Of a stretch of DNA of 64,000 nucleotides, positions 23,222 through 50,000 are shown piece by piece. The first letter of the stretch is position 1; each line of letters starts with the position of its first letter. The notes beneath the pieces are model-generated. The model was not told the origin of the DNA. It worked only from the letters and a program-made list of their open reading frames with translations, and made no database searches. Source of the stretch: Convolutriloba macropyga (lineage: Eukaryota); NCBI RefSeq assembly GCF_964194025.1, contig NC_134474.1, forward strand, positions 65,100,001 through 65,164,000, read 5' to 3'. The translations under genes and the position numbers were made by a program.

Positions 23222-23893
23222 TCATTCAGTTACTAGCCAACAATCACTACTCAAGAAAATCTCAGAATCGTGCACTAATTCATCTAATACAGGTTTTAAA
23301 AAAACGGAAGTTAGTTTACAGTCTGAAACCGATCTCTGTAATGAAGGAAACATTTTCTGCAGTATTTCTGTACTTGGAGGTGGATTAAATTCTTTGATCA
23401 CGCTCTTCAGTTCCACTCTTAATTTGGGATCATTTCTAGGAATGTATATTTTCGGCAAACATGAGTTTTCGGAAGACTCAATTTGATCGTAATTGGGATT
23501 GATTTTGAGAATGATTTTATCGGTTATCAGACAATATAGAGCTATATCTAACACAAATTGACCGTTTTTGAAGCAAAACGATTGACCGACTTTCTCACAC
23601 CCTTTTTGAACACTTGACGCAAAAGTTGACTTTTGAAAATCGGTTTTAAAATTGCCAAATTTTTCACAAACTGACTGATCATTTGGTACTTTATTAGTCG
23701 GGAGAATAATTTTATAATCTTCTATACAATTTAAAACTCCGCTCTCCACGACATCTGATAGATCGAGCAAATAATGAGGTTTCGAAGATCGGAAGAACGC
23801 ATTGAGTCGTTCGGTTGTCATGGCAACAATGGAATCCAAGGACTTGATGGAATCCAAAACGAGGTTATCAAGAGCGCCGTTTTCCTGGTCGTC
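23222..23893 (-). CDS. STN1: STN1 coding exon 2 (winged-helix C-terminus)
   Basis: Acceptor tttttag at 23894-23895 is in frame with ORF 23222..23857 (DDQENGALDNLVLDS...). Confidence 0.75.
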   Translation of the reverse strand, partial: DDQENGALDNLVLDSIKSLDSIVAMTTERLNAFFRSSKPHYLLDLSDVVESGVLNCIEDYKIILPTNKVPNDQSVCEKFGNFKTDFQKSTFASSVQKGCEKVGQSFCFKNGQFVLDIALYCLITDKIILKINPNYDQIESSENSCLPKIYIPRNDPKLRVELKSVIKEFNPPPSTEILQKMFPSLQRSVSDCKLTSVFLKPVLDELVHDSEIFLSSDCWLVTE

Positions 23894-24915
23894 CTAAAAA
23901 ATAGTAAAAAATAAAGAAAAAGAAGAGGGATAATTCGGTCATTTTCTTTTGTTAGAAACTTATAATTTTTGCCATTAATTAGCCTTTTTTCTTGATTCAG
24001 AATCACAAGCTAGCAATAGAAATCATGCTTCTTACCAACTTTTCTCCAGCACTACTGCTAAATTTGAAGTACATATAGACTAGATGTGTTTTCACATATG
24101 CGCGGAGGTTAGGGATGGACATGGAAGGGTTGTTGGGGGGGGGGGGGTTCAGGGTTAGCCGTTTACAAAAAAAACAATCAAAATTTCGCAACAGTTAGCA
24201 TTACAGACTCTTTAGACAAATCATTTATTGAAAACATGAAACCAACTCAATATGTTCTCATAAACTTCATTAACTTATGGCTCACCTTGGCTTCAGTTTT
24301 GACAGGCCAGTAGGACACTATAGAACTCTTCACTTGACGACCATCCAAGTACTCTCTATGCTTAACTCTCAATTTCATGTAGTTCAACTCTTCATTCAAA
24401 CTCAGCGACTTTTCGTTGTCTTTGAATACACTGATTTCGAACACATCTAGAATCCTGGTCGAGTCCATTTGTTTAATGAAAGCTGAAACTATGACATCCT
24501 GGCCAAACTCAAGCGGTAGTTCTCCGTGTTTTATATTTACAAAGTCGTTTTTCCATAACAAACAATTCATAATATGCGAATCATCTTGGAGCAGAAATTT
24601 ATAAAAACTGTCATTGTCGACAATTTTTCGGACCATTCCGAACACTTTAACTCGTACAATTGGGTGGCCTCGATAATGAAAAACCAACTTATTGCTCTTC
24701 AATTTGTACAGAAATTTCAAAGAGTTGCGAATTTCATATATGCTCAAACAAACAGGCGTTGAGCCGAACTCGCTTTTGAATAACAATTCTTTGGGAACCC
24801 CGAATTCACACACGAGGTTCCGATATTCAGGACCGTCGAATATCTCAGTGAAATAGTGAAAACAGGCTGGGTCGATAAAAACTGAGCCCGGTTTGTAGTT
24901 CAAAATAGCTTGCAT
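23222..24915 (-). CDS. STN1: CST complex subunit STN1 (OBFC1), spliced gene; coding exons 24915-24286 and 23893-23222, ~433 aa
   Basis: The N-terminal OB fold FHYRGHPIVRVKVFGMV...FYKFLLQDDSHIMNCLLWK resembles STN1 (FLYNGHPIKQVDVLGTV...FYSYGVDDSTGVINCICWK). The C-terminus LKPVLDELVHDSEIF resembles the last STN1 winged helix (LQQVLELLEDQSDIV). The phase-0 intron 24285-23894 has an AAG|GTGAGC donor and a ttttttag|GAC acceptor. The start codon is uncertain; the first in-frame ATG is at 24915. Confidence 0.8.
24286..24915 (-). CDS. STN1: STN1 coding exon 1 (OB fold)
   Basis: ORF 24247..24924 trimmed at the GT donor after KTEAK; OB-fold motif GHPIVRVKVFG. Confidence 0.8.
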
Positions 24916-25205
24916 TGAAAGCACTTCAATTTCATTTTGTACCTCTCATTTAATTAGGAATAGGTTTCATACAAAAGTCGAACACAACTTCGAATCTGAA
25001 ACAGAAATATCATACACAAATTTATTCGAATCTTAGAAAAAAGTAGAATGCGCAATTAAGTGAACGAACCTTTATCAGACGTTCCGCGAATGCTTATAGC
25101 TACAATACGGCGCAAAAAACAGACAAAATATTATCCGCCTAATAATAGGCCACTAAAATAGGCCGTGTAGAATATTAGATGGATTCTCAATTTCCGCAAA
25201 ATTCT

Positions 25206-25572
25206 AACATAAACTGACTAAGGTCGGAGAAATTGCTCTCGAACGACAGGCCTAGATAATTTTTTACTAATGAAAAAAATCCGACCAATGAGGGTTTCGA
25301 ACCCTCAACCTACGTCGTACTAAACTGAAGCATTAACCACTCCTCTATCCGCGTATTGTTCTAGCGTATCTTAACAATGGTTTCATTTTAGCAAAGGACT
25401 TAATTTCTGAATACCATGAACTTAGATCCAGCGAAAATCAAGAAGTCAATTGTGAAAAAGTCACTCGGGAAGTGAAAACAACTGAATGTTCCAGAAGAAA
25501 ACGGTCAAGCAAAAATTTTTCATACAAAGAAACTCGTTTAAAATAATTGCTTCAGACTTTGTTCGAGTGCTT
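25206..25572 (-). mobile_element. Helentron/HINE-like non-autonomous element, family A, carrying a tRNA-like cassette
   Basis: Left end aacat-ctgactaaggtcgg-aattgctctcgaacga; degenerate right end aattgcttcagactttgttcgagtgc. Confidence 0.6.
25281..25352 (-). other. tRNA-derived (SINE-head-like) sequence with A and B boxes
   Basis: Minus strand: TAGAGGAGTGGTTAA (A box), GAGGGTTCGAAACCCTC (T-arm/B box), then a T run. The acceptor and anticodon stems do not pair properly, so it is not called a tRNA gene. Confidence 0.6.
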
Positions 25573-25911
25573 CAAATTCATAAATGTTATATAATGTGCA
25601 CACAAATTACGCAATACAACGCGTATTGTTACAGTAGTCAACTATGTCAAGCAGAAAACGAATCCCTACATTGACTTCATCATTTGTTTGGATCAAATTG
25701 TGTCGAATAGAGTTTAAAACAGAAACGCTTCAAATAAAAGGAAGAGCGAAACTGTTATGGTAATAGTAATTTAATAGTTAATAGTAAGCTATTTTTAACT
25801 TAAAATCTTTCTAGGAAGATACTTGGTTTGAGCCCATCCATATATTTTCCACGAAAAACGTCCTCTATAAAAATTTGAAAGGATGCTACGACTCAAATTT
25901 AATTGCAAAAT

Positions 25912-26706
25912 GAAAGGAGGGAAATCATTGCGGCCGAAAATCCTGGCCTTATAGCACAACGCTTTATCTTAAATTTGGTTATGCAAATTCTGAAAACCTT
26001 TCCAGTTCTTCCTTGCCGGTGAATCTATATTAATTTCGTGATAACTAAACAATTATTAATAATACAGGCGTAATTAAGACAATTAATTATTGACTAATGA
26101 AAACACCAGGCAAGGAGCATCAAAAATTTAACCAAGTCAATTTAACCAAGAAGGTTAAACCAAGCTTTAAAACCTCATATTAACTGTTTTTGAGGCAATT
26201 TGTAACTCATAGCGCAATCCTGTCAGCAGTATCACATAGTATTTTAAATAGCTTCTATCTAGGGTATTAACGAATTGGACTTTCTGAACATAGAAGCCCA
26301 TACACTTTACGTTTACGTTTAGAAAGTCCAATTCTTTAATACCCTAGATAGAAGCCATTTAAAATACTGTAACACTGCTGACAGGATTGAGCTATCATTC
26401 ATAAATTGCCCCAGAAAACAGTTCAATTTAGGTTTTAAAGCTTGATTAAACCTTCGCTAAATTGACTTGTCTAAAGATATTGTGCTCTTTAATCTTATCT
26501 TGTCTAGTTTTCATTAGACAGTAGAAGTGCCATAAAAAATTTTTTAGTTATTACGAAATGTAAACCGGCGTTTGGACCTAATATCTAACAGAGGTTCAAA
26601 GACAAGAAAGAGTTGGAAAGTTTTGCAGCATTTGCTTAGCCAAAATTAGGATAACAGGCTTGTGCTTTATGAATGTATTTTTGGACGCCATGGTTTCCCT
26701 ACTTTC
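25912..26706. mobile_element. ~795-bp imperfect palindrome (foldback element 1)
   Basis: Arms pair throughout, e.g. cttctatctagggtattaa.gaattggactttct / agaaagtccaattc.ttaataccctagatagaag; loop about 26287-26320. Confidence 0.85.
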
Positions 26707-26712
26707 TTCTAT

Positions 26713-27253
26713 AATTTTGTCCGCTTAGGAACGAAATTTTTTGCACGTCAATTTGCGCTCTATCAAAAAACGGTGTGAGCAGAAACAGCTCTACGGTGTT
26801 CAAATTTGTTCACCAGTCAAACTACTAGAAAATTTTTAGGACGTGCGGAATTTATGTTGAAAATAATTACTCCAAAATATTTAACTAACAAATACGCCTC
26901 CGATACTCCTCGTCGAGTCGTAAAAAACAGCGTATCAATACAGTTCAAATTCTTGGCTTTGTAATATACAAACGTTAAGTGTATGGGCTTGTTTTTAAAA
27001 ATGTCAAGAATTTGAACTGTATTGGTACGCTGTTTTTTCATGACTCGAAGAGGAGTATCGGGGGCGTATTTTTAATTCAAAAAAATTCGAGTGGGTCTGA
27101 AACAGAAATTCCCAACATCCTAAAAAATTCTAGTGGCTTGACTGCTGAACAAATTTGAACAGCGAAGAGAAAAGTTTTTTTGCCCACACCGTTGTTTTTG
27201 AGAGAGCGCGAAATTGACGAGCGAAAAAATTTGGTTCTAAAGCGAGCAAAATT
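26713..27253. mobile_element. ~540-bp imperfect palindrome (foldback element 2)
   Basis: cgatactcctc.tcgagtc.t.aaaaaacagcgta.caatacagttcaaattcttg / caagaatttgaactgtattg.tacgctgtttttt..gactcga.gaggagtatcg; loop about 26965-26995. Confidence 0.9.
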
Positions 27254-27886
27254 TTTTGTTCACCTGCGGTTACTTTAAGCAGTTTATAAGACATTGGCGA
27301 TTTTTCTTCTCTTAAGATTAAGTTTGAGAAGATAACTTAGACAATATAAAGTTTGCTTTGAGTTTTTTTTTAAAATTGTGATTTTTAATCAAGTTTCATG
27401 CTAATCTACACATTTTTTTTGCCATCTTGCTCTTTTTTAAGCCACATCAGTAATTTTTTGCGCATTGTTTTCTTCCATTGCAATTGCGGAGAAATGAATA
27501 GTCACCTATTGCTCCATATAATTTTGAGGCATCATTTTTTGCAGTCTTGAAAGCACAAAACCTTTTTTTAACTTTTTCTAAATTAGACGTTTTCGTGATT
27601 TCCTACTGTTGCATGAGCATTTCAATGATCACAATTTTATAAACGAAAAGTTGTCGTTCTTATGCGCACTTCCATTATATTAGGAAATAATTGAATTTTT
27701 AATTTTTTTTAGTTCACTTGGTTTTTTGGGCTAAAAATTTTGATAATTTAATTAATTATCTAAAATATTCTAATTTTTTTCGTGGGTGGTTTCAGTAGGT
27801 ATTTTTTCTGAATGGGTCTTTATTGGCTGAGATGACTCGAGTTGTTGCCGGAATTCTTCCGGCTAGGTTCTTTTAAAGATTTGTTT

Positions 27887-28210
27887 TCATGACTTTGAAG
27901 TCAAATTGAAGTGACGATTATGGTCAAACGGAAACAGGAAGTGGAACAAAACAGCTAGTGGTTTTGCTACGCGAAAGTTTTTCACACTAATTTTAATGTG
28001 GAGTGAGTCTTTGAACAAAAATTTGCTTTCTTCATTGTGATTTTTTGTGCACATAGGGCAATTTGGGTAGATTTTACTGTTTTTGATTTTTTTAATGGTT
28101 TTTGATTTTTTTCTAAATAGTTTCCCCAATGCTTTCATAGCCCTATCTAGGTCCAATTTTTCTAAGTCAATAAAAATTCGTTGAATTTTAGGTCAGGATT
28201 TGTGTCAAAT
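27887..28210 (+). mobile_element. Inverted copy of the family C HINE-like element (cf. 50220-50555)
   Basis: Reverse complement of 50280-50555; the ORF track gives similar spurious peptides ending NLTSKS. Confidence 0.7.
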
Positions 28211-37700: not shown

Positions 37701-39275
37701 TTACAAATCCCAGGAAAACAAATGATGCTTCACCAGCAGATCTCTCACTCCCTCCTTCATCGGTTTGCTATTTCCACTGGATTGATCAGCCGATGACTTT
37801 TTAGACGTCGTTGTATTCGTAATTCCTATAGTCTTGATAGCCACATTCTCTTTTGCAGCCTTAGAGGGAAGTTCTGTGTGAACATGCAAATTGAACCCAA
37901 ACTCGCAGAGAATTCTGAGCTCACATTTAATTTGAACCCAGCCGGGCGAATTCATAAACGCTCCCTTGTTGTACCATTTGGCAATGACAGCCTCACAGGA
38001 CGCCAGGATTTCGAGCCAGATATGAAGAACTTGTTCGTTGAGACCCATGCAGACCCAAGATCTGAATTTGGAATCCATTCCAACATGCACAGAATCGTGT
38101 GTTTGGTTTATTGATTGCACTGAACGGTATAATAGCTCTTCAGGTGTCAAAACTTTACCGTCCTCGTCCAAACGATAAGTTTTACACAAAACAAGCCGAG
38201 AATAAACAGAGTTGAAATCTTTCTCAACTTCTTTGATGGCAGCTTCTTCAATAAATAGCCACGGGTGACATTCGTGACCAATCATTGCTTGCTTCATTCC
38301 ATGACGGAAAAACTTGTCCAAATTTGGGCACAAATGACCTCGAACAAGATCTGTAATCGTATCTGTAACTGAATCATCTCCAGCGTGCGTGTACTGTTTG
38401 CTTCGTTCGTCCAAAAGTTCCACAAATTTGGCAGGGAACCATCCTCGGATCCCATTAAGCTCCCCAACCCAACAATGCTCGTCTTTCATTGAAATGATTG
38501 TTATGACATCGTTTCTTTTGAAACCCAATTCATCGTCATCGTGACGTTCGAAGTCCAACAACGCTTTGGCCCTGCGACGTCTGTTCCTCGCGATTTTAAG
38601 ATACCTTTCGTGATCTCTTTGATGTGACTCCAAGCTGTAATCCGCTGCAATTGACAACGTTTTGTACTTCTTCTCAGTGGCTTGAAAATGCCTCGCGATT
38701 TGCTGCACCGAATCTCGGAGGTCTGTAATAATTTCAGTTTGCTGTATATTTTTAACCTTTACAGTTTCGATGTCAGCCGTGTTGAAAAACAGATTCATCA
38801 TCGACTTAGGTCTTCGCATTTGGCGTCTGTTTACAACTTGCTTATTGGCTCCGTCGTTAAGTTCGTGTCCTTTCGATTTATGTTCCTCAATCACAACCGT
38901 CATCTGCTTACGTCTTTGAGTCTCGATCAGCACTTCGGTTAAAGATCCCGCAGTTTTGGCAGAAGTCTGGAGCAATTTGTCGACGTCGGTGACCATGTCA
39001 GGTAGCTTGGCTAGTAAGTTGAAGATTTGTCCAGTGTTGGTCTGTTGAAGGATTTCGTCTTGGTGGAGTTTGAGCATTCCAAGTGTGATTTGGAACAGGA
39101 CGACAGATCCATCGTAGAAGAGCTGGTCCCAGACTCTGAGGAGTACTTTGGTGTGGAAAACTCCAGAGAAGAGAGTGAGGAACCAGTGGAGAGTTATCAA
39201 TGACAGTTCTATGTCATACTCCTTTAAGTGGATGTCTATTTCGGGCAAGTAGTTCATCACCAAGAGTCTCAAAAC
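37701..39275 (-). CDS. SGSM3: SGSM3 coding exon 4 (TBC C-part, SH3, RUN)
   Basis: tttcag|GTT TTG AGA (VLR); 524 codons to the TAA stop. Confidence 0.95.
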   Translation of the reverse strand, partial: VLRLLVMNYLPEIDIHLKEYDIELSLITLHWFLTLFSGVFHTKVLLRVWDQLFYDGSVVLFQITLGMLKLHQDEILQQTNTGQIFNLLAKLPDMVTDVDKLLQTSAKTAGSLTEVLIETQRRKQMTVVIEEHKSKGHELNDGANKQVVNRRQMRRPKSMMNLFFNTADIETVKVKNIQQTEIITDLRDSVQQIARHFQATEKKYKTLSIAADYSLESHQRDHERYLKIARNRRRRAKALLDFERHDDDELGFKRNDVITIISMKDEHCWVGELNGIRGWFPAKFVELLDERSKQYTHAGDDSVTDTITDLVRGHLCPNLDKFFRHGMKQAMIGHECHPWLFIEEAAIKEVEKDFNSVYSRLVLCKTYRLDEDGKVLTPEELLYRSVQSINQTHDSVHVGMDSKFRSWVCMGLNEQVLHIWLEILASCEAVIAKWYNKGAFMNSPGWVQIKCELRILCEFGFNLHVHTELPSKAAKENVAIKTIGITNTTTSKKSSADQSSGNSKPMKEGVRDLLVKHHLFSWDL

Positions 39276-42200
39276 CTGAAACATCAACAAACATACAGCT
39301 AAACTGCATCAAATTTACAAGTCAATTATATACCGACTAACGTCACGCGAATTGCTATCAAACGACAGGCGCGGAAATTTACTTTAATGGGCGTCTTGCT
39401 TTGAAGTTAACTAACATAAGCGACTAACGTCTAACCGACTAACGAAATGCTCTCAAACGACCGGCGAGCGGTTGGCTTCGTCAGTAGCTAGCCACGGTAT
39501 AGTGAGAAAGCTTCAGCGTAATTGAAGGGACGTGAGGTGAGCGCAGCGGGGGGGGGGGTTGCACCGGGGGCTGATGGGCGGGGGGCAACAGCGGGGGAGC
39601 ACCGGTGGGAGGGCGGTTTTTGGCTGTACGGGGCCCTTAGAGCCTGAACGATGTGCAGGGATGGGGATTGGGGGGGGGGGGGGTGAAGTGAGAGGGGGCG
39701 GGGTGATGTGTGTGTGTGTGTGTGGGGGGGGGGGGGGGTGTCAACCTCTAAGAACCGCCCTACACACCATAAGTATGTCTCCAACAGTTTCTGTTGAAAG
39801 GCTCTCAGAGCACTTAATTCCCGCTGGGCGTTACCTGTTTATTCCGTTTTTGAGGACGAGAGGTCAAATGGGTCAGACAAAAAATCGGTCAAGCAAAAAT
39901 CGCATTAAAAAAGACCAACAGGACAAATATAATTGCTACAAACTTCGTTTGAGAGCAATTAAAAAGATGGTTTATTGAAAGATCACATAAAGATTTACTT
40001 AATGATTTACTTTAAGATTTACTTAAAGATCACTGAAAAACGAACGCAAGCGTGACAAAGTCCCTTCAGAAGTCAACAAATGTTCTAGAACAAAAGCGCA
40101 AGAACGGCCAAGCAAAACATTGCATAAAAAAGACACATGTTCATAATAATTGCCTCAAACTTCGGTCGAGAGCAAGTAAAAGCCTTCAGTTGTCGGCTGG
40201 AATGGATAAAACCACAATTTTACACTCATTTCTGAAATCAATTCAAACTAAACGACCTATTTAGCAGCTGATTACTCACAAATATTACTTACTCACAAAA
40301 ATATCGGCTACGCGAAACAGTATGATAGGGGGTCCTGGACACCAATCGTTATGTCATCAATGCTATCTTCTATAGCAGAAAAACAATCCGACGCTTTATT
40401 CTAATTCTGAAGAGATCGTTCTGTATGATATATGCACTAACATAATGAATGAACATAACCGATTAACGGCAGAGTCAAACTCTAAGAACCGCCTTTCACA
40501 CAATAAATTTATGTCTCCAAAACAGAGAATCCGGTACTTAGAGTCTAATAAGCCGAAATGCTCGAAGAGAACTTAATGCCCTCCGAGCGTTACCTGTTTA
40601 GCCCGTTTTTGAGGCGGAAAAGTCAAATGGGTCAGACGAAAAATTGGTCAAGCGAAAAATCGCTAAAAAAAGACCAACAGGACTAACATAATTGCAACAA
40701 ACTTCGTTTGAGAGCAATTAAAAATCTTACCTATTGGTAACATAACGAATTCACATTTACCTTTTGGTCAGCCTGGACTCCAATCAACGACTGTGTGTAG
40801 TACGATGCCGGCACTATATCCTCAATGATAGCTGTAACCATCCAAAACGTCTCCTCTTCCTCCATGAACAGCAGGAACGTCGCCGCAATTGTACCCATAC
40901 CTTGACAATACCCAATCTCTGGGTACAGCCAGGCAAGGGCACGCAGCACCCGTCTCAGCCTCGGAACCCCGTACGATATCCCAGACGAAAAGAGTGCATT
41001 ATTAGGCAACGTTCTCAGTAAGTCTTTCTCAATTTGGCGAGATGAAATTAAGTTATCGTCCATAGAGTGCTTCACAATTTCCACGTAGGAAATCTCAGAC
41101 TTGACCTGCTTCAGTCTCCCACCCCCGAGACGTGACCAAATTTGAGGTCGCATGCAGTGCGGGATTCCTTCTTTGACCAACATACGAAGTTTTTCCGATT
41201 TGGGTAGAATGTCATCGACCTTGTCCCAAGTGAGGTCTCCAAGGTCGTTATTGCAAGTGAACTCGAGATGAGCTACCCATCTGAGAACTAAATTTGGGTC
41301 ATCATTCAGAGGTTCACTTAGAAGTTGGATGCTATTTGGCTCTGCGTCATCTTCGCGGTCTTCTCGGAAGCCGAATTCGTCATACCTAAACGAATCTAAT
41401 TGTAATCAATGCTTTCGGAATTTTTCGAAATTTTGTAAATAGTATCAGAATAACAGCTAATAGCAAAACCTTTTGGTGACAACAGTAAAAAAAATTGATC
41501 CGCCATGCATCTCGTTTAAAACGGTTACGCTCCCATTGCCGTAAATACTACGGGCAAAATAATGACCAACACTGTTGTGAGAGGTCACTGGTTGAATAAG
41601 AAAAGGGGTTCAATGTGTCAAGACTTTCTGGAAGTATCGTCAAAAATAGTCCATAAAATGCTCAAACATTACACGAATCCCGCTACTAAAGAATCCAGAA
41701 TAGAATTGCAACAAGTATCATAGCTTGCGTGCAGAACGTATTTCAAGTAGAAGTACCTGAATTCGGGCGACAGTCTGTACTTCTCGCTTTGGGTCAACAC
41801 ACTCAAGATATCCTGTGGCCACATACTGGGAGTGAGAGCACTGAAGGGTCCATGGGCAGGAGGGAGGAAGGGTCCGAGAGGTTTGCCCAACTGGACCAGG
41901 AGTGGCTTGGAGGCTGAAGTACCCGGCTTGACCAGCACTCCTATGTCCTTGTCCAACCGACCACTTTTGTACACCTTAAAGAAATACTTTGCAAGCAAAT
42001 GAAGAGAAAAATGAGCGTTTGAGCATCTAATGATGTTTATAGTAGTTAACTCAAACTTGAATGTAATTCATTTTTCATGTACCTTTTTAATTGAGAAATT
42101 GAGACACATACAAGCAATGCAATCATTTTGTCAACTTGTGCTCGAAGCTCCGATTCCTGAATTAAAACAATCAATTCTCAAGATACTCTCCAGGTTTATA

Positions 42201-44092: not shown

Positions 44093-47000
44093 CTGAACAG
44101 AGAAAGAAATCGTTGCCGACTGTTTAATTAATTTTGAAACAATCAAACTTTTCGAGAGCAGGGGAAAATATCAGATTTATTTGTATAAAATAGCTTCGAA
44201 AAATTTACATTCGGAGCCACTGTTTTAAAAAATATGAGCTCTTTGTTTGTATACCATGCTATGTTTGAACGTCATCGTTAACAAAATTGCAACCGATGTA
44301 TGCGAAATTACAAAATATGGTTAACCATTATTTTGTTCATTTTAATTGCTGACATGTAATGCAGAATCTTGACCACCTTATAAAGCCTAGTTATTTCGGC
44401 CCGCTTTAAGCTTTATTAAGTTTTTATTAAAGATAAGGAGCGTTCGGGAAACTTTGCAGGATTTGACAAAAAATGTTGATGACTGCCTATTCGGAACCAA
44501 AAGTATGTCTGCGATTCCATTTAAAAACGATAAAACTTAGCGGAGGGTAACTAACGGTCACATGTTTCAAAATTTTTATTTGAAAACTGTAAAAGGAGAG
44601 AGATGAAGATGAAGTGACAAATCATGTGAACACCTTTTCTCTCATTAGGATTGGAATTCTCTTCTAACATTTAACGTTCAAGTTCTTTCGAAGATAAATT
44701 GTTTTGTATTGAGGAACGGGAGATGAACCAAGAATTAAAAATATTGGGGGTAACTTTGACATGTATGGACATTCTAATTCGACCTGGCGTTCAACATCCG
44801 TTCAGTATCGGTGTTGAGGGAGGGCGGGGGAGGGGGGGGGGGGGGGCTGAAGAATTAACATATGTAATTCCAAATAAAGCTGGAGCCTAAAGTGTTCAAA
44901 TCATTCTATTTCTTCAAATTCTTGCTATGTCTGATATGTAGCACTAAGTGAAATCTCAAACTCTCCATTTTTCTCTACAAGTTCTATATGCTAAATAGTA
45001 CATGAAATTTCTTAGTACAACAAAGTTCACTTATATTGAAGTTATTACAAGATTTGCAGTGAGCCGAAATTAACCAAATAGGACAAATCGAACCTAGTTT
45101 CGACGAACAGCACACTTGTAAACAAAGATTGCGTCTTATCAATATGTTGCGGGGGCTCCTGTAAAGAATGAAATAATTGACCCCAAAACATTGATGACGT
45201 GATTAACCTTTTTAATGTTGACGTTCAGGAGACTGTGGGTCGCATGAACTATTCGCGTCATGAAATAGGTCTCCAAAACATTCACAAAGTGAATTATTCT
45301 AAATCTGAACCGGTAGAACAAATTCATCAATTTAGAACTAGTTCTTTCTTTTTGACCTTGAAAATATTTGTTCAACATCGATATCTTCAACCTGGTAGTC
45401 GAATATTTGGCCCATTTGATTTGAGATAGAAATACAAAAACTTGATTCAGAGTGTTGAAAACATCCGGCGAAAAGACGACACTAATAGGCCATCTCACGT
45501 TGACCATTATAACTAATTCTTTTAACTGGTTTATTACATTTTGGTTGAAACCCGAATCGTTTTTGACTGTAGAATTTATTGATGCTACAATATTTTCGTA
45601 AAACTCCTCTTGAAATCCGCCTCTATTGGCTTCGAAAACGTCTTGTAGTTTCAAGGTTAACATCGTCGGATCCTTCCATTTCTGTTTCCGTGAAATATCC
45701 TCAAAAAGGTCGAACAAAAACTCGTGCATTTCAGAAGCGTTTGACTGGAACAAATAAAGGGCCGAAATTCCGTTTGTAAACAACTCCATTTTAGCCGTTT
45801 TTATTTCAGAAAGCAGTAATCCATTAGCTAAATTCAAATCTTTTAAGATAAGTTGATATGTCGAACTTTTAGCACGCGAAATATTCCTTTTAAACAAAGG
45901 AATTGAGGCATCGACTAAATACTTTTCCGATTCATTGACTTTAATTTGAGTTTCAGCAAATTTCTCCAAATTGGTTGATGTATTTTGTTCGGAATCACTT
46001 TGAGCAAAAGATTGGTCGCGTTCAGCAACAGTTGTAGGTTCAAAATCAGATTTTGATTCATCAATTTTGAGCTCACTTTTATTTTCCGAAACGTCAAGCC
46101 AAAAGACCGAATTCAAATTTTTCTTGAATATTTCTGAAATGTCCGGCGGAAAATCTTTCGGTAAAAACTTTTCAGAGCTCGTTAGCATTTCAACTGATTT
46201 CGCTACATCAGTTAACTGTATGAAAAATTGACAATCGTCCCGGCTGAGAAAGTTAGCAGTTTCTGGTTGCAAGGAAAAAGCTTCTTTCCAGTACCTTGAA
46301 GAATTAATCGCAACTTCCGAATTCCTTTTGACGAAAAATTCGTTGGCTGTTGTTTGGTTCAAACCTCCGTAATTAATCCAGTTATGAAATATGTCTAATG
46401 AGCTACAGTACACAGCTGCGAATAAGTTGACAAAAGCCTTTATTGACAAAAAATTAGGAAAAGATTGTCCGAGTAAAAATTTATTCAGAATAAAGTTAGC
46501 CTGTTTCAGCAGCAACAAAGTGACTTTCGAAATGGCATGTGCCGCCAACTCCTTTTCTGGAAAAACTAAAATTTCTTGCATACTTGCGAATATTTCATTG
46601 CAAATAACTGCAAAAAATGCAAAAAATGGTTTCCAGTTTGATAATTCTTGGCAAAATTGAAGTAAAGTATAAGTAGTAAAATCATCTTTAGCTTTTTGCT
46701 CGATTTTGAGCAAAAATTCTTCAAAGAGCTGTAAAATTTCATGCCTAAAAGCTTGCGTGAATTTGGTTAATGCTAAACAGTTAACTACCGAATCAAAATC
46801 AACGCAAAGTTGTCGGCAAATTGTGACGTCATTTCTCAATTTAAGAACACTTTCAAGAGTTCGTTTTAGTGATTCGAAACTTAAATGGGTTAGAAAAATA
46901 TCAGAATTAACAATGAAACTTTCATTATCAAATGATCTGATAAAAATTGTCACGTTAATTTCATTACTCATAAGCGCCCAGATACATTCACGTATTATCG

Positions 47001-50000
47001 TAACTTCAGTTAAACATTTTGATGAAGATTTGACCGGTTTCATCAACGGGTTAAAGCTTCTCATAGCCACAAACGACCTACTAAAGAATGCATTTTCGTC
47101 GTTATTCGGATCAGAAATCAATTCCCGCTGAAGTTTCTCAAAATTTCGTCCCATCCGCCAATAGAATTTGCTTTCATCGATATTATGAAATGTGAACTCA
47201 ACGTGTTTTAAACTGAAAACATTTTCAACTTCATTTCCGCTGTTTTCAGAATCACTTGAGTGACCCGATTTCAAGTCAGTAGCCTCATCGTCCGAGGCTT
47301 CGAAAACTAGAGGTTCCTTTTGAAATCTGGCTGTTAACAATTCGAGTTGATTGTATGACTTGGATCGATTTTCTGATGTATTCTTAGCTTCGTCATCACA
47401 GTCCCAATCACTCAAATCTGATTGGTTATTGTCATCAACATCGGCATCATCATCCTAATAACAGAGCCCTTCTTACAAAAAAGCAAGTTAAATTCATAAC
47501 ACTGCAAAATGTTTACCTTCAACGTTATAGCGAGATTGAAATAGCTAACTTCATAACTCCTCATTGGTAAAATAAGGTCGCGTGAGCAATTATACATTAA
47601 AAAATCAAGAAAACTCGGCGCTATATTTACAAAAAATATTTTAAATAACCGATATCCGGGAGCGCCAATTTGCATTAAGCTGCGGTGTTACGTTCCATTG
47701 AGTTTGATTAAGACTTGATAGAAGCTAAAAGTATGTTAGCATTCTGTCGAAAAAACGAACTAGATTTTTTTTTCAATTAGGGCCCAAAACGGTAAAAAAA
47801 AACAATTTGTTGCAAATGAGGGGGCTAGGTTCCTGTCCTACTAAGCGATAAGAGTTGATAAAGAGCCGAATGTTCTGCTACAATTTTTTAGGAAGGTGAT
47901 GAAAATTTTCGGCCAATAGACGAGTTTCAGTTGAGTTATCTTTCTCATATGCCAAAACCACAGAAAAGCTTCGAAATACATAAACATAACTGGCAGATGA
48001 CCAGAACATAGCCGCAATAGCTTCGTAGATCTGCAGTCTCAAAAAGATAGTTAAAGAAACAAACCAAAACATAGCTGGCAGATTGCCAGAAAATAGCCGC
48101 AATAGATTCGTAGATCGGCAGTCTAAAAAAAACAGTAAAAAAGACAGACCAAAAAAATTCGTCTTTTCATTGAAGGCTGATCTGTTATATTTTGATTAAA
48201 AATCTGTATAAGTTATTGCTGCCTCTATTAGCTGATCTCAAATATCCTTCATTTAGAGTGATACACACCCATTTGATCTTATCTCTTTGAATTAAAGTAA
48301 ATAAAAGTCAATTTCAAAGTGAGGAAGTCATTTTTGAGAGTGAGGTAAGTCAAGTGTGACCAAAAATTTAATCACGCGCATGAACAAAAAAACTCGCTCC
48401 ACTAAGAGCGAAAAATGACGTCACACATGCAATTCAGTTGAAATTGCATGAACGAATGAACAAAAAATGGCTGTGACGTCATATGGTCGTAACAAAAATC
48501 ATGACGACGAAATAAAAAAAAACCAAGAGAAGGCCAATAATAGCCTCAGCTATCGCTGTGCGGCTATTAAAAACTTCCTTTCATTAAACGAAGTGGTGAG
48601 ATGTTATATTTTGACTAAGAATCTGTATAAAAAGAAAGCTGCTTCTGTTAGCTGGTCTTGAAAAACCTTCAATTTGACACACATTTGCTAATCTCTTTGA
48701 ACTAAAGCAAAGAAAAGTCGATTTGCGACAGAGGAAGCCCCTTTTGTGAGGTGACCAAAAACTTATTCACACGATTGAAAACTCGTTCCACTAAGAGTGA
48801 AAAATGAAGTCACGCATAAAATTCAGTTGAAATTGAATGAGCGAGTGAATGAAAAGCAGATTTGAAAAGGTTGTGACGTCATATGGTCTTAAGAAAAACT
48901 TTGGTCGACGGAATAAAAAACAGCAGGACAAGTCGTGTCCTGCAATATAAAGAATTTTCAAAAATAAAATACTAGACGTAGAATGCACAATAGATCGATA
49001 GTGAAATCCGCTAAAAATAAATCCGATCAAAACATTTTAAAAAATTAGCAAAAACCCAAGTCAAAGAGCCGCATGTGAACAAAAAAAATCGCCATCGAGA
49101 AAGCGAATTTTGTTCAAACGCCATTTTCTCACTTTGAAATTGGAGTGAAAACAATTTACGCCCCAAAACCACTCGCTTCTTTGCATCACTTCCTGTTTCA
49201 GTTAGACCAAATCATAACTTCAATTCGACTTAAAAATGTGTGAACAATGAGTGAAAATGTATGACCAGCTTCTAAACACAGCGCCCCAATACAATTAAAA
49301 TTTTTTGAGTTGTAAACGAAGCTGACAGATTGCCAGAAAACAGCCGAAATAAGCTGCTCTCAAATAACCTTCATTTAAATTGACACACACCCATTTGACC
49401 TTATTTCTTTGAATTAAAGTAAACAAAAGTCAATTTCAAAGTGAGGTACCCATTTTTGAGAGTAAGGTAAAACATTTGACCAAAAATTTACTCACGCGAA
49501 TGAACAAAACAACTAGCTCCACTAAGATTGAAAAATGACGTCACGCACGCACTTCAGTTGAACGAATGAACAAAAAGCAGAATTGAAGTGATTGTCATGT
49601 CATATGGTCGTAACAAAAATCTTGACGAAATAAAACATAGCCGGAAAATAGCCGCGATAGACGCTTGGGGCCTTCCATGAATTGAAACAACTAAAGAGAT
49701 TAGATAGACAGATCGACCACCAGTCCTTTAATAGACCACAAGCACTAGACTTTTTGGGTTAGCTTTGGACTGTCATTTTTATGAGACACATAAGCTCTGA
49801 GGAGAAAGCCCTAATAGGGCTTTTCAAAATTAGGATCTTTTCCGTTTGTGCCCCCTCAGCTTAGTGGGCGCATATTATTTGCATCCTCAGATGCACGTGC
49901 AATAATTTTTTACAAAATGACTTACTATGTAATGGCACGTGCTCTGTAACTGGGGGCGCATAACGTACTGGGGGCACAAACGGAGAAGACACCAAATTAA

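Follow-up and report, generated by a model that had tools for sequence, protein, structure and literature searches.

The window analysed here is a 64-kb stretch of the Convolutriloba macropyga genome. Two of its genes look like ordinary host genes, both on the minus strand: one at 37701-41183, whose long exons encode the RabGAP-TBC, SH3, and RUN domains of an SGSM-like protein, and one at 45139-47415, which encodes a gamma-tubulin complex component C-terminal domain. Positions 23222-24924, also on the minus strand, hold open reading frames (ORFs) of 225 amino acids (MQAILNYKPG...) and 211 amino acids, the first weakly matched in Pfam to Stn1, a telomere protein (E 0.0014, under the gathering score). 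Judged from these frames and this match, the interval is possibly a two-exon STN1-like gene, which would start about 1 kb from the first of the foldbacks described below. High-copy dispersed repeats flank the foldbacks at 25250-25571 (about 320 bp, with 1976 candidates at a first look) and at 27837-28203 (about 367 bp, 2814 candidates), the latter forming tandem runs at some loci (e.g., C1:35388695-35390138). The subject of this analysis is a pair of foldbacks in the intergenic DNA 1 to 2.3 kb upstream of the STN1-like ORF.

Both foldbacks are long imperfect palindromes, and the sequence and a repeat finder place them at 25912-26706 (foldback 1) and 26713-27253 (foldback 2), which confirms the coordinates and the spacing of about 6 bp given in an earlier note on this DNA. 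They are the only inverted repeats of at least 40 nt within 1.5 kb in the 64-kb window. Foldback 1 consists of an outer (left) arm, A (25912-26293), which is single-copy and non-coding and is taken as the resident original; an unpaired 21-nt centre, c (26294-26314, plus strand), with the sequence AAGCCCATACACTTTACGTTT; and an inner (right) arm, A' (26315-26706), which is a mirror copy of A. A gapped alignment of A' with the reverse complement of A covers 369 aligned nt and 36 gap columns and gives 80.2% identity overall; locally, the identity falls from 92% beside the centre to 67% mid-arm. A 6-nt joint, TTCTAT (26707-26712), separates the inner arms of the two foldbacks; it matches the continuation of neither, and arm homology stops on either side of it. 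Foldback 2 begins with its inner (left) arm, B (26713-26969, minus strand), followed by its 21-nt centre, c' (26970-26990, minus strand), which differs at one position from the reverse complement of c. B' (26991-27285, plus strand) follows and includes the outer arm of foldback 2 (26991-27253) as well as 32 nt of repeat sequence that continues past the palindrome (27254-27285). Over 252 nt, B is 84.5% identical to the reverse complement of B'.

The arms of foldback 1 and foldback 2 are unrelated to each other, as the earlier note had seen by eye: their local alignment scores of 17 to 23 are at the level of shuffled sequence (mean 19-20, sd 2.2-2.6). The match between the centres, described in the same note, is equally firm. 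Read as its reverse complement, 26970-26990 is AAGCCCATACACTTAACGTTT, identical to c at 20 of 21 positions and therefore in opposite orientation, and none of 100 shuffles of the window gave a centre-centre match at up to 3 mismatches. At 26303-26320 (ACGTTTACGTTT), c ends in ACGTTT and the right arm of foldback 1 opens with these same 6 nt in tandem; this tandem at the turning point may be a trace of slippage or priming.

The paired-foldback structure is real DNA rather than a product of misassembly. In an artefactual fold-back the arms would be identical, whereas these are 15 to 22% diverged, with many indels. Short-read data support the same conclusion. A contig from run X1 spans 24747-27038 with zero differences and so covers most of the structure, taking in foldback 1, the joint, and the left arm of foldback 2 with its centre, although X1 is possibly the sample behind the window assembly. 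Run X3, which has SNPs of its own and stems from a different sample within the same study (P1), yielded a contig over the inner arm at 26326-26722. The depth on foldback 1 is normal, equal to that of flanking single-copy DNA in runs X2 and X3, and in the mapped runs depth is even across genic and intergenic sequence, which is what DNA runs should show. In run X5, which is labelled as organism B and is sparse and patchy (12 of 30 bins), reads fall at 25891-26143 and 27043-27192 with 0 to 6 differences; only the outer arms have reads in this run, with none at 26152-26939. A taxon without the duplication would give such a pattern, though at this coverage it carries no weight.

It is tempting to see the shared centre as the conserved feature of the pair, in contrast to ordinary MITEs with their conserved termini, and this was the earlier note's view. 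However, the innermost arm sequence is as well conserved as the centre. Its 1 difference in 21 positions is what the innermost arms would predict: their innermost 50 nt are 92% identical in foldback 1 and 86% in foldback 2, and at most one difference in 21 has an estimated probability of about 0.3 at the innermost-arm rate and about 0.06 at the whole-arm divergence. Nor is a contrast with MITEs meaningful here, because neither foldback is a multi-copy element.

Motif searches covered the whole genome, 1,175,981,408 bases (1.18 Gb), in which c occurs only at 26294-26314 and 26970-26990. At up to 2 mismatches, the 21-mer finds both centres and one additional match, which is at control level and does not lie at a palindrome centre. 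At up to 3 mismatches, the genome holds 66 matches versus 71 for the reversed control pattern, and inverted 300-nt flanks were found at none of the 29 near-match loci examined, where the scores (16 to 31) were those of chance. Recurrent 3-mismatch variants, such as AAGCCAATACACTTTACATTC, sit inside three unrelated repeats with sequence conserved on both sides. The outer 12-mer of c, AAGCCCATACAC, has 27 genome matches versus 26 for the control and reveals no further inverted pair. There is, then, no population of motif-centred palindromes in this genome, and this goes against the centre as a motif that recurs at palindrome centres. The earlier note had suggested a site at which flanking DNA is copied into an inverted duplication. 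The flanks are indeed copied in mirror orientation around the centre, but with two adjacent copies in 1.18 Gb, the motif shows no sign of being a recurrent binding, nicking, or resolution site.

The arms themselves come from two kinds of DNA. Foldback 1 is single-copy, since a genome search on both strands returns itself alone, and A' is thus a local mirror duplication. The arms of foldback 2 match a dispersed repeat with at least 475 candidate loci; the 40 loci that were scored are 72 to 75% identical to these arms and about 94% identical among themselves. Copies of the repeat elsewhere are solitary and none is palindromic, and foldback 2 as a whole is unique. The repeat, about 2 kb long, is non-coding and mosaic; its copies have a shared start and mosaic lengths, and the foldback 2 arm is its first part. 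Based on BLAST and a MAFFT alignment of 27 copies, family homology runs from about 26988 to 27285, so that B' represents the opening ~295 nt of the element in an old copy. This homology begins at a recurrent family boundary, TTTTTTACAATTC, which coincides within 1 to 2 nt with the inner ends of both foldback 2 arms. On the right, it extends 32 nt past the palindrome; the left arm ends at 26713, next to foldback 1. B' reaches 32 nt deeper into family sequence than B, which marks B' as the resident original. B is thus truncated and mirrors only the first ~257 nt of B'; repeat-family members match B in the opposite orientation. Against the family consensus, the two arms share 40 sites and have 22 and 28 private changes; the shared sites indicate that mirroring affected a copy that had long been in place. 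Just inside B', a TTTTTAAAAA run at 26992-27001 may have been a preferred nick or stall site, which is a guess.

Several features of the repeat family were noted in passing. As seen in L034:498-2467, L036 (in reverse), and loci L006-L033, it has three recurrent 5' starts. One class carries a hairpin "leader" of about 50 nt (AATAGCC...GGCTATT), which is duplicated in L036, and stand-alone pieces made up of the first 50 to 100 nt of the repeat lie upstream of some copies. The ~2-kb copy L034 has no ORF of 120 or more amino acids, and no clear terminal inverted repeat (TIR) or target duplication was seen in the family copies. We also compared the inner end of A with the repeat leader, a homology that would make c an insertion into a contiguous repeat, and found it not significant (z of 0.2 to 1.4).

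How did two palindromes with unrelated arms come to turn on the same 21 nt? We consider it probable that both are the scar of one old, locus-specific rearrangement, arising in repair or replication and now decaying neutrally. The arms mirror adjacent resident DNA around a short, non-palindromic 21-nt spacer, as in fold-back and snap-back products. The inner arms abut directly, which is expected if two newly made ends were joined. The arms of foldback 1 differ by a p-distance of 0.218 (K2P 0.257) and those of foldback 2 by 0.177; the gap is estimated at about 1.3 SE, which makes the two values statistically equal. Both palindromes can therefore be of the same age, which fits a single event.

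The ancestral order that we infer is A-c-B', in which A would be single-copy intergenic DNA, c 21 bp of no special character, and B' the terminal part of a repeat copy that was old by then. During break repair or disturbed replication at c, synthesis would have doubled back on either side, leaving c unpaired as the loop of each turn. A would have been copied into A' (about 390 nt) by one fold-back and B' into B (about 257 nt) by the other, and joining of the new ends via TTCTAT would have produced A c A' B c' B', with three new junctions by either route. The centre would then be one ancestral stretch kept twice and not a recognition site. In the replicative route, three template switches would take a nascent strand that had copied A and c back along A, into B', back through c, and then forward. 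This would copy c once per orientation and so yield the observed opposite loops directly. In the break route, both ends would keep c, snap back, and join, and one loop would later be flipped by recombination between the then-identical arms. Loop flipping through recombination between palindrome arms is plausible.

Some observations sit less easily with this origin. A simple break model, in which both ends snap back with c, predicts loops of the same orientation, whereas the observed loops are opposite. A random breakpoint would rarely be expected to place the inner ends of the foldback 2 arms within 1 to 2 nt of a family boundary. In addition, the copied tracts are 260 to 390 nt long, compared with snap-back insertions of tens of nt in PMC2943611 and PMC11724301. 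Finally, c has no stable self-structure (MFE 0), and in its present letters, after about 10% divergence per arm, the possible pairs are limited to A1-T21, A2-T20, and C4-G18.

An alternative that we judge unlikely, though worth setting out in full, is that the pair is an excision footprint. In this scenario, a TIR transposon with ends c and c' would have lain between A and B' and been cut out with a long stagger that left 21 nt per end; each 3' overhang would have snapped back and primed copying of its own flank, and the ends would have been joined, the element end being AAGCCCATAC. The transposase of the Drosophila P element makes a cut with a long stagger, leaving 17-nt 3' overhangs. Without any extra step, excision predicts the same 21 nt twice, in equal lengths and opposite orientation, each looping a mirror copy of its own flank, and it also predicts that just a few nt would separate the joined inner arms. 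AA/TT and C-G pairs are possible between the two ends of c, in the manner of the 3- to 4-nt repeats that prime snap-back synthesis (PMC2943611). However, no element with a c terminus rises above chance in 1.18 Gb, and the 3-mismatch relatives lie inside other repeats in which both flanks are conserved. There is no target-site duplication around c...c', and snap-back tracts of 260 to 390 nt were not found in the excision-repair and break-repair literature searched. If the excision reading were true, these giant snap-back fill-ins would be a germline fossil of excision repair, and they would point indirectly to a P-like cutter that acoels have since lost.

A functional role for the hairpins can be given very little weight. 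If the region were transcribed, long hairpins would form, and since the repeat to which the foldback 2 arms belong has at least 475 candidate loci, the locus might be a source of endo-siRNAs under selection, with foldback 2 acting against the dispersed repeat. Substitutions between the arms tell otherwise. Transversions dominate over transitions, 53:28 in foldback 1 and 30:15 in foldback 2, and G.U-compatible pairs are in no excess over A.C pairs on either strand (14:14 and 9:6, respectively). With arms that are 18 to 22% diverged and carry many indels, nothing indicates selection for an RNA hairpin. Foldback 2 is, moreover, merely 72 to 75% identical to the family that it would target, and foldback 1 has no other genomic homologue as a target. 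An Rfam search returned generic miRNA-precursor matches only, far under the gathering scores (43 versus 100 and 39 versus 83), and such weak matches reflect hairpin shape only.

We hold it just as improbable that the two foldbacks have separate origins, with foldback 2 formed by two independent head-to-head insertions of the repeat beside c', foldback 1 formed on its own, and the shared centre produced by a small secondary copying. In favour of such insertions, both foldback 2 arms begin at the natural family boundary, and they are only modestly closer to each other (p 0.217) than to sampled family members (0.26 to 0.30). However, a third member of the subfamily that this implies was not found, the best other match being 74 to 75%. 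The left repeat copy ends exactly where foldback 1 begins, and on this view the second c has neither a source nor flanking homology from which it could have been copied. The equal divergence of the two palindromes would have to be a coincidence.

The earlier note's other suggestion makes c the shared core of a family of palindromic transposons with changing arms. This idea, like that of c as a site of binding, nicking, or resolution, accounts for a centre common to two palindromes with unrelated arms, but it deserves almost no credence, given that just two adjacent copies exist in 1.18 Gb, foldback 1 is single-copy and foldback 2 is repeated only as solitary single arms, the centre is no better kept than the innermost arms, target-site duplications are missing at the ends (..gcaaaat/GAAAGG...CTTTC/ttctat and ttctat/AATTTTG...CAAAATT/ttttgt), and an ORF scan of the region found no frame above 74 amino acids and no enzyme, and none of the linked recombinase or transposase ORFs that the note had envisaged lies nearby. 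Two further candidates were rejected on the flanks, which consist of unique DNA and another repeat family to the left of A and, to the right of B', of the continuing repeat and then unique DNA. An inverted triplication of the ODIRA type would place forward copies of the middle segment to the left and right, which these flanks do not hold. Nor do the flanks fit a reintegrated circular inverted dimer.

If the single-event reading is correct, a break or stalled fork has left a compact natural trace at this locus, with both flanks mirrored around the same 21 bp and rejoined. This mirrored-flank outcome is already known in miniature from break-repair experiments. The paired foldbacks add no gene, regulatory system, or novel class of element, and the motif is without detectable function.

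Comparison with known systems helps place the structure. Like MITEs and Foldback-type transposons, the foldbacks are small and non-coding and consist almost entirely of inverted arms. In contrast to those elements, which are multi-copy and have target-site duplications and conserved termini, they show none of these features. When a P element is excised, short pieces of its two inverted ends stay behind in the donor DNA, facing in opposite directions, and c and c' resemble such remnants; they differ in having no detectable source family and in the unusual length of the mirror copies of their flanks. In ODIRA, as set out in PMC10766183, an inverted triplication arises through template switching between leading and lagging strands at short inverted repeats. 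The locus shares with it two palindromic junctions around an inverted middle segment (here A'B), whereas ODIRA gives full forward copies on both sides and two different loops, and here the sequence to the left of A is not B', that to the right of B' is not A, and the loops have the same sequence.

Break repair provides comparisons of another kind. In Drosophila, snap-back synthesis at breaks is primed by inverted repeats of 3 to 4 bp and followed by joining (PMC2943611), and PMC3907307 and PMC11724301 describe short templated inverted insertions at breaks and fold-back duplications in humans and yeast. As in snap-back microhomology-mediated end joining (MMEJ), a 3' end that folds on a few bases, copies its own flank, and joins would leave an inverted repeat across the junction (PMC2943611 and PMC11724301). 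Compared with the reported insertions of a few to a few tens of nt, the tracts here are of unusual scale, at 257 and about 390 nt, and would have formed at both ends at once. Fold-back inverted duplications with a short single-copy spacer are also reported among human germline and tumour rearrangements (PMC3907307). Unlike those duplications, the structure here has arms of 260 to 390 bp in a continuous chromosome, with both sides mirrored and two palindromes that abut and have the same spacer. Like them, it is a one-off and not mobile, with resident DNA mirrored around a short unpaired spacer.
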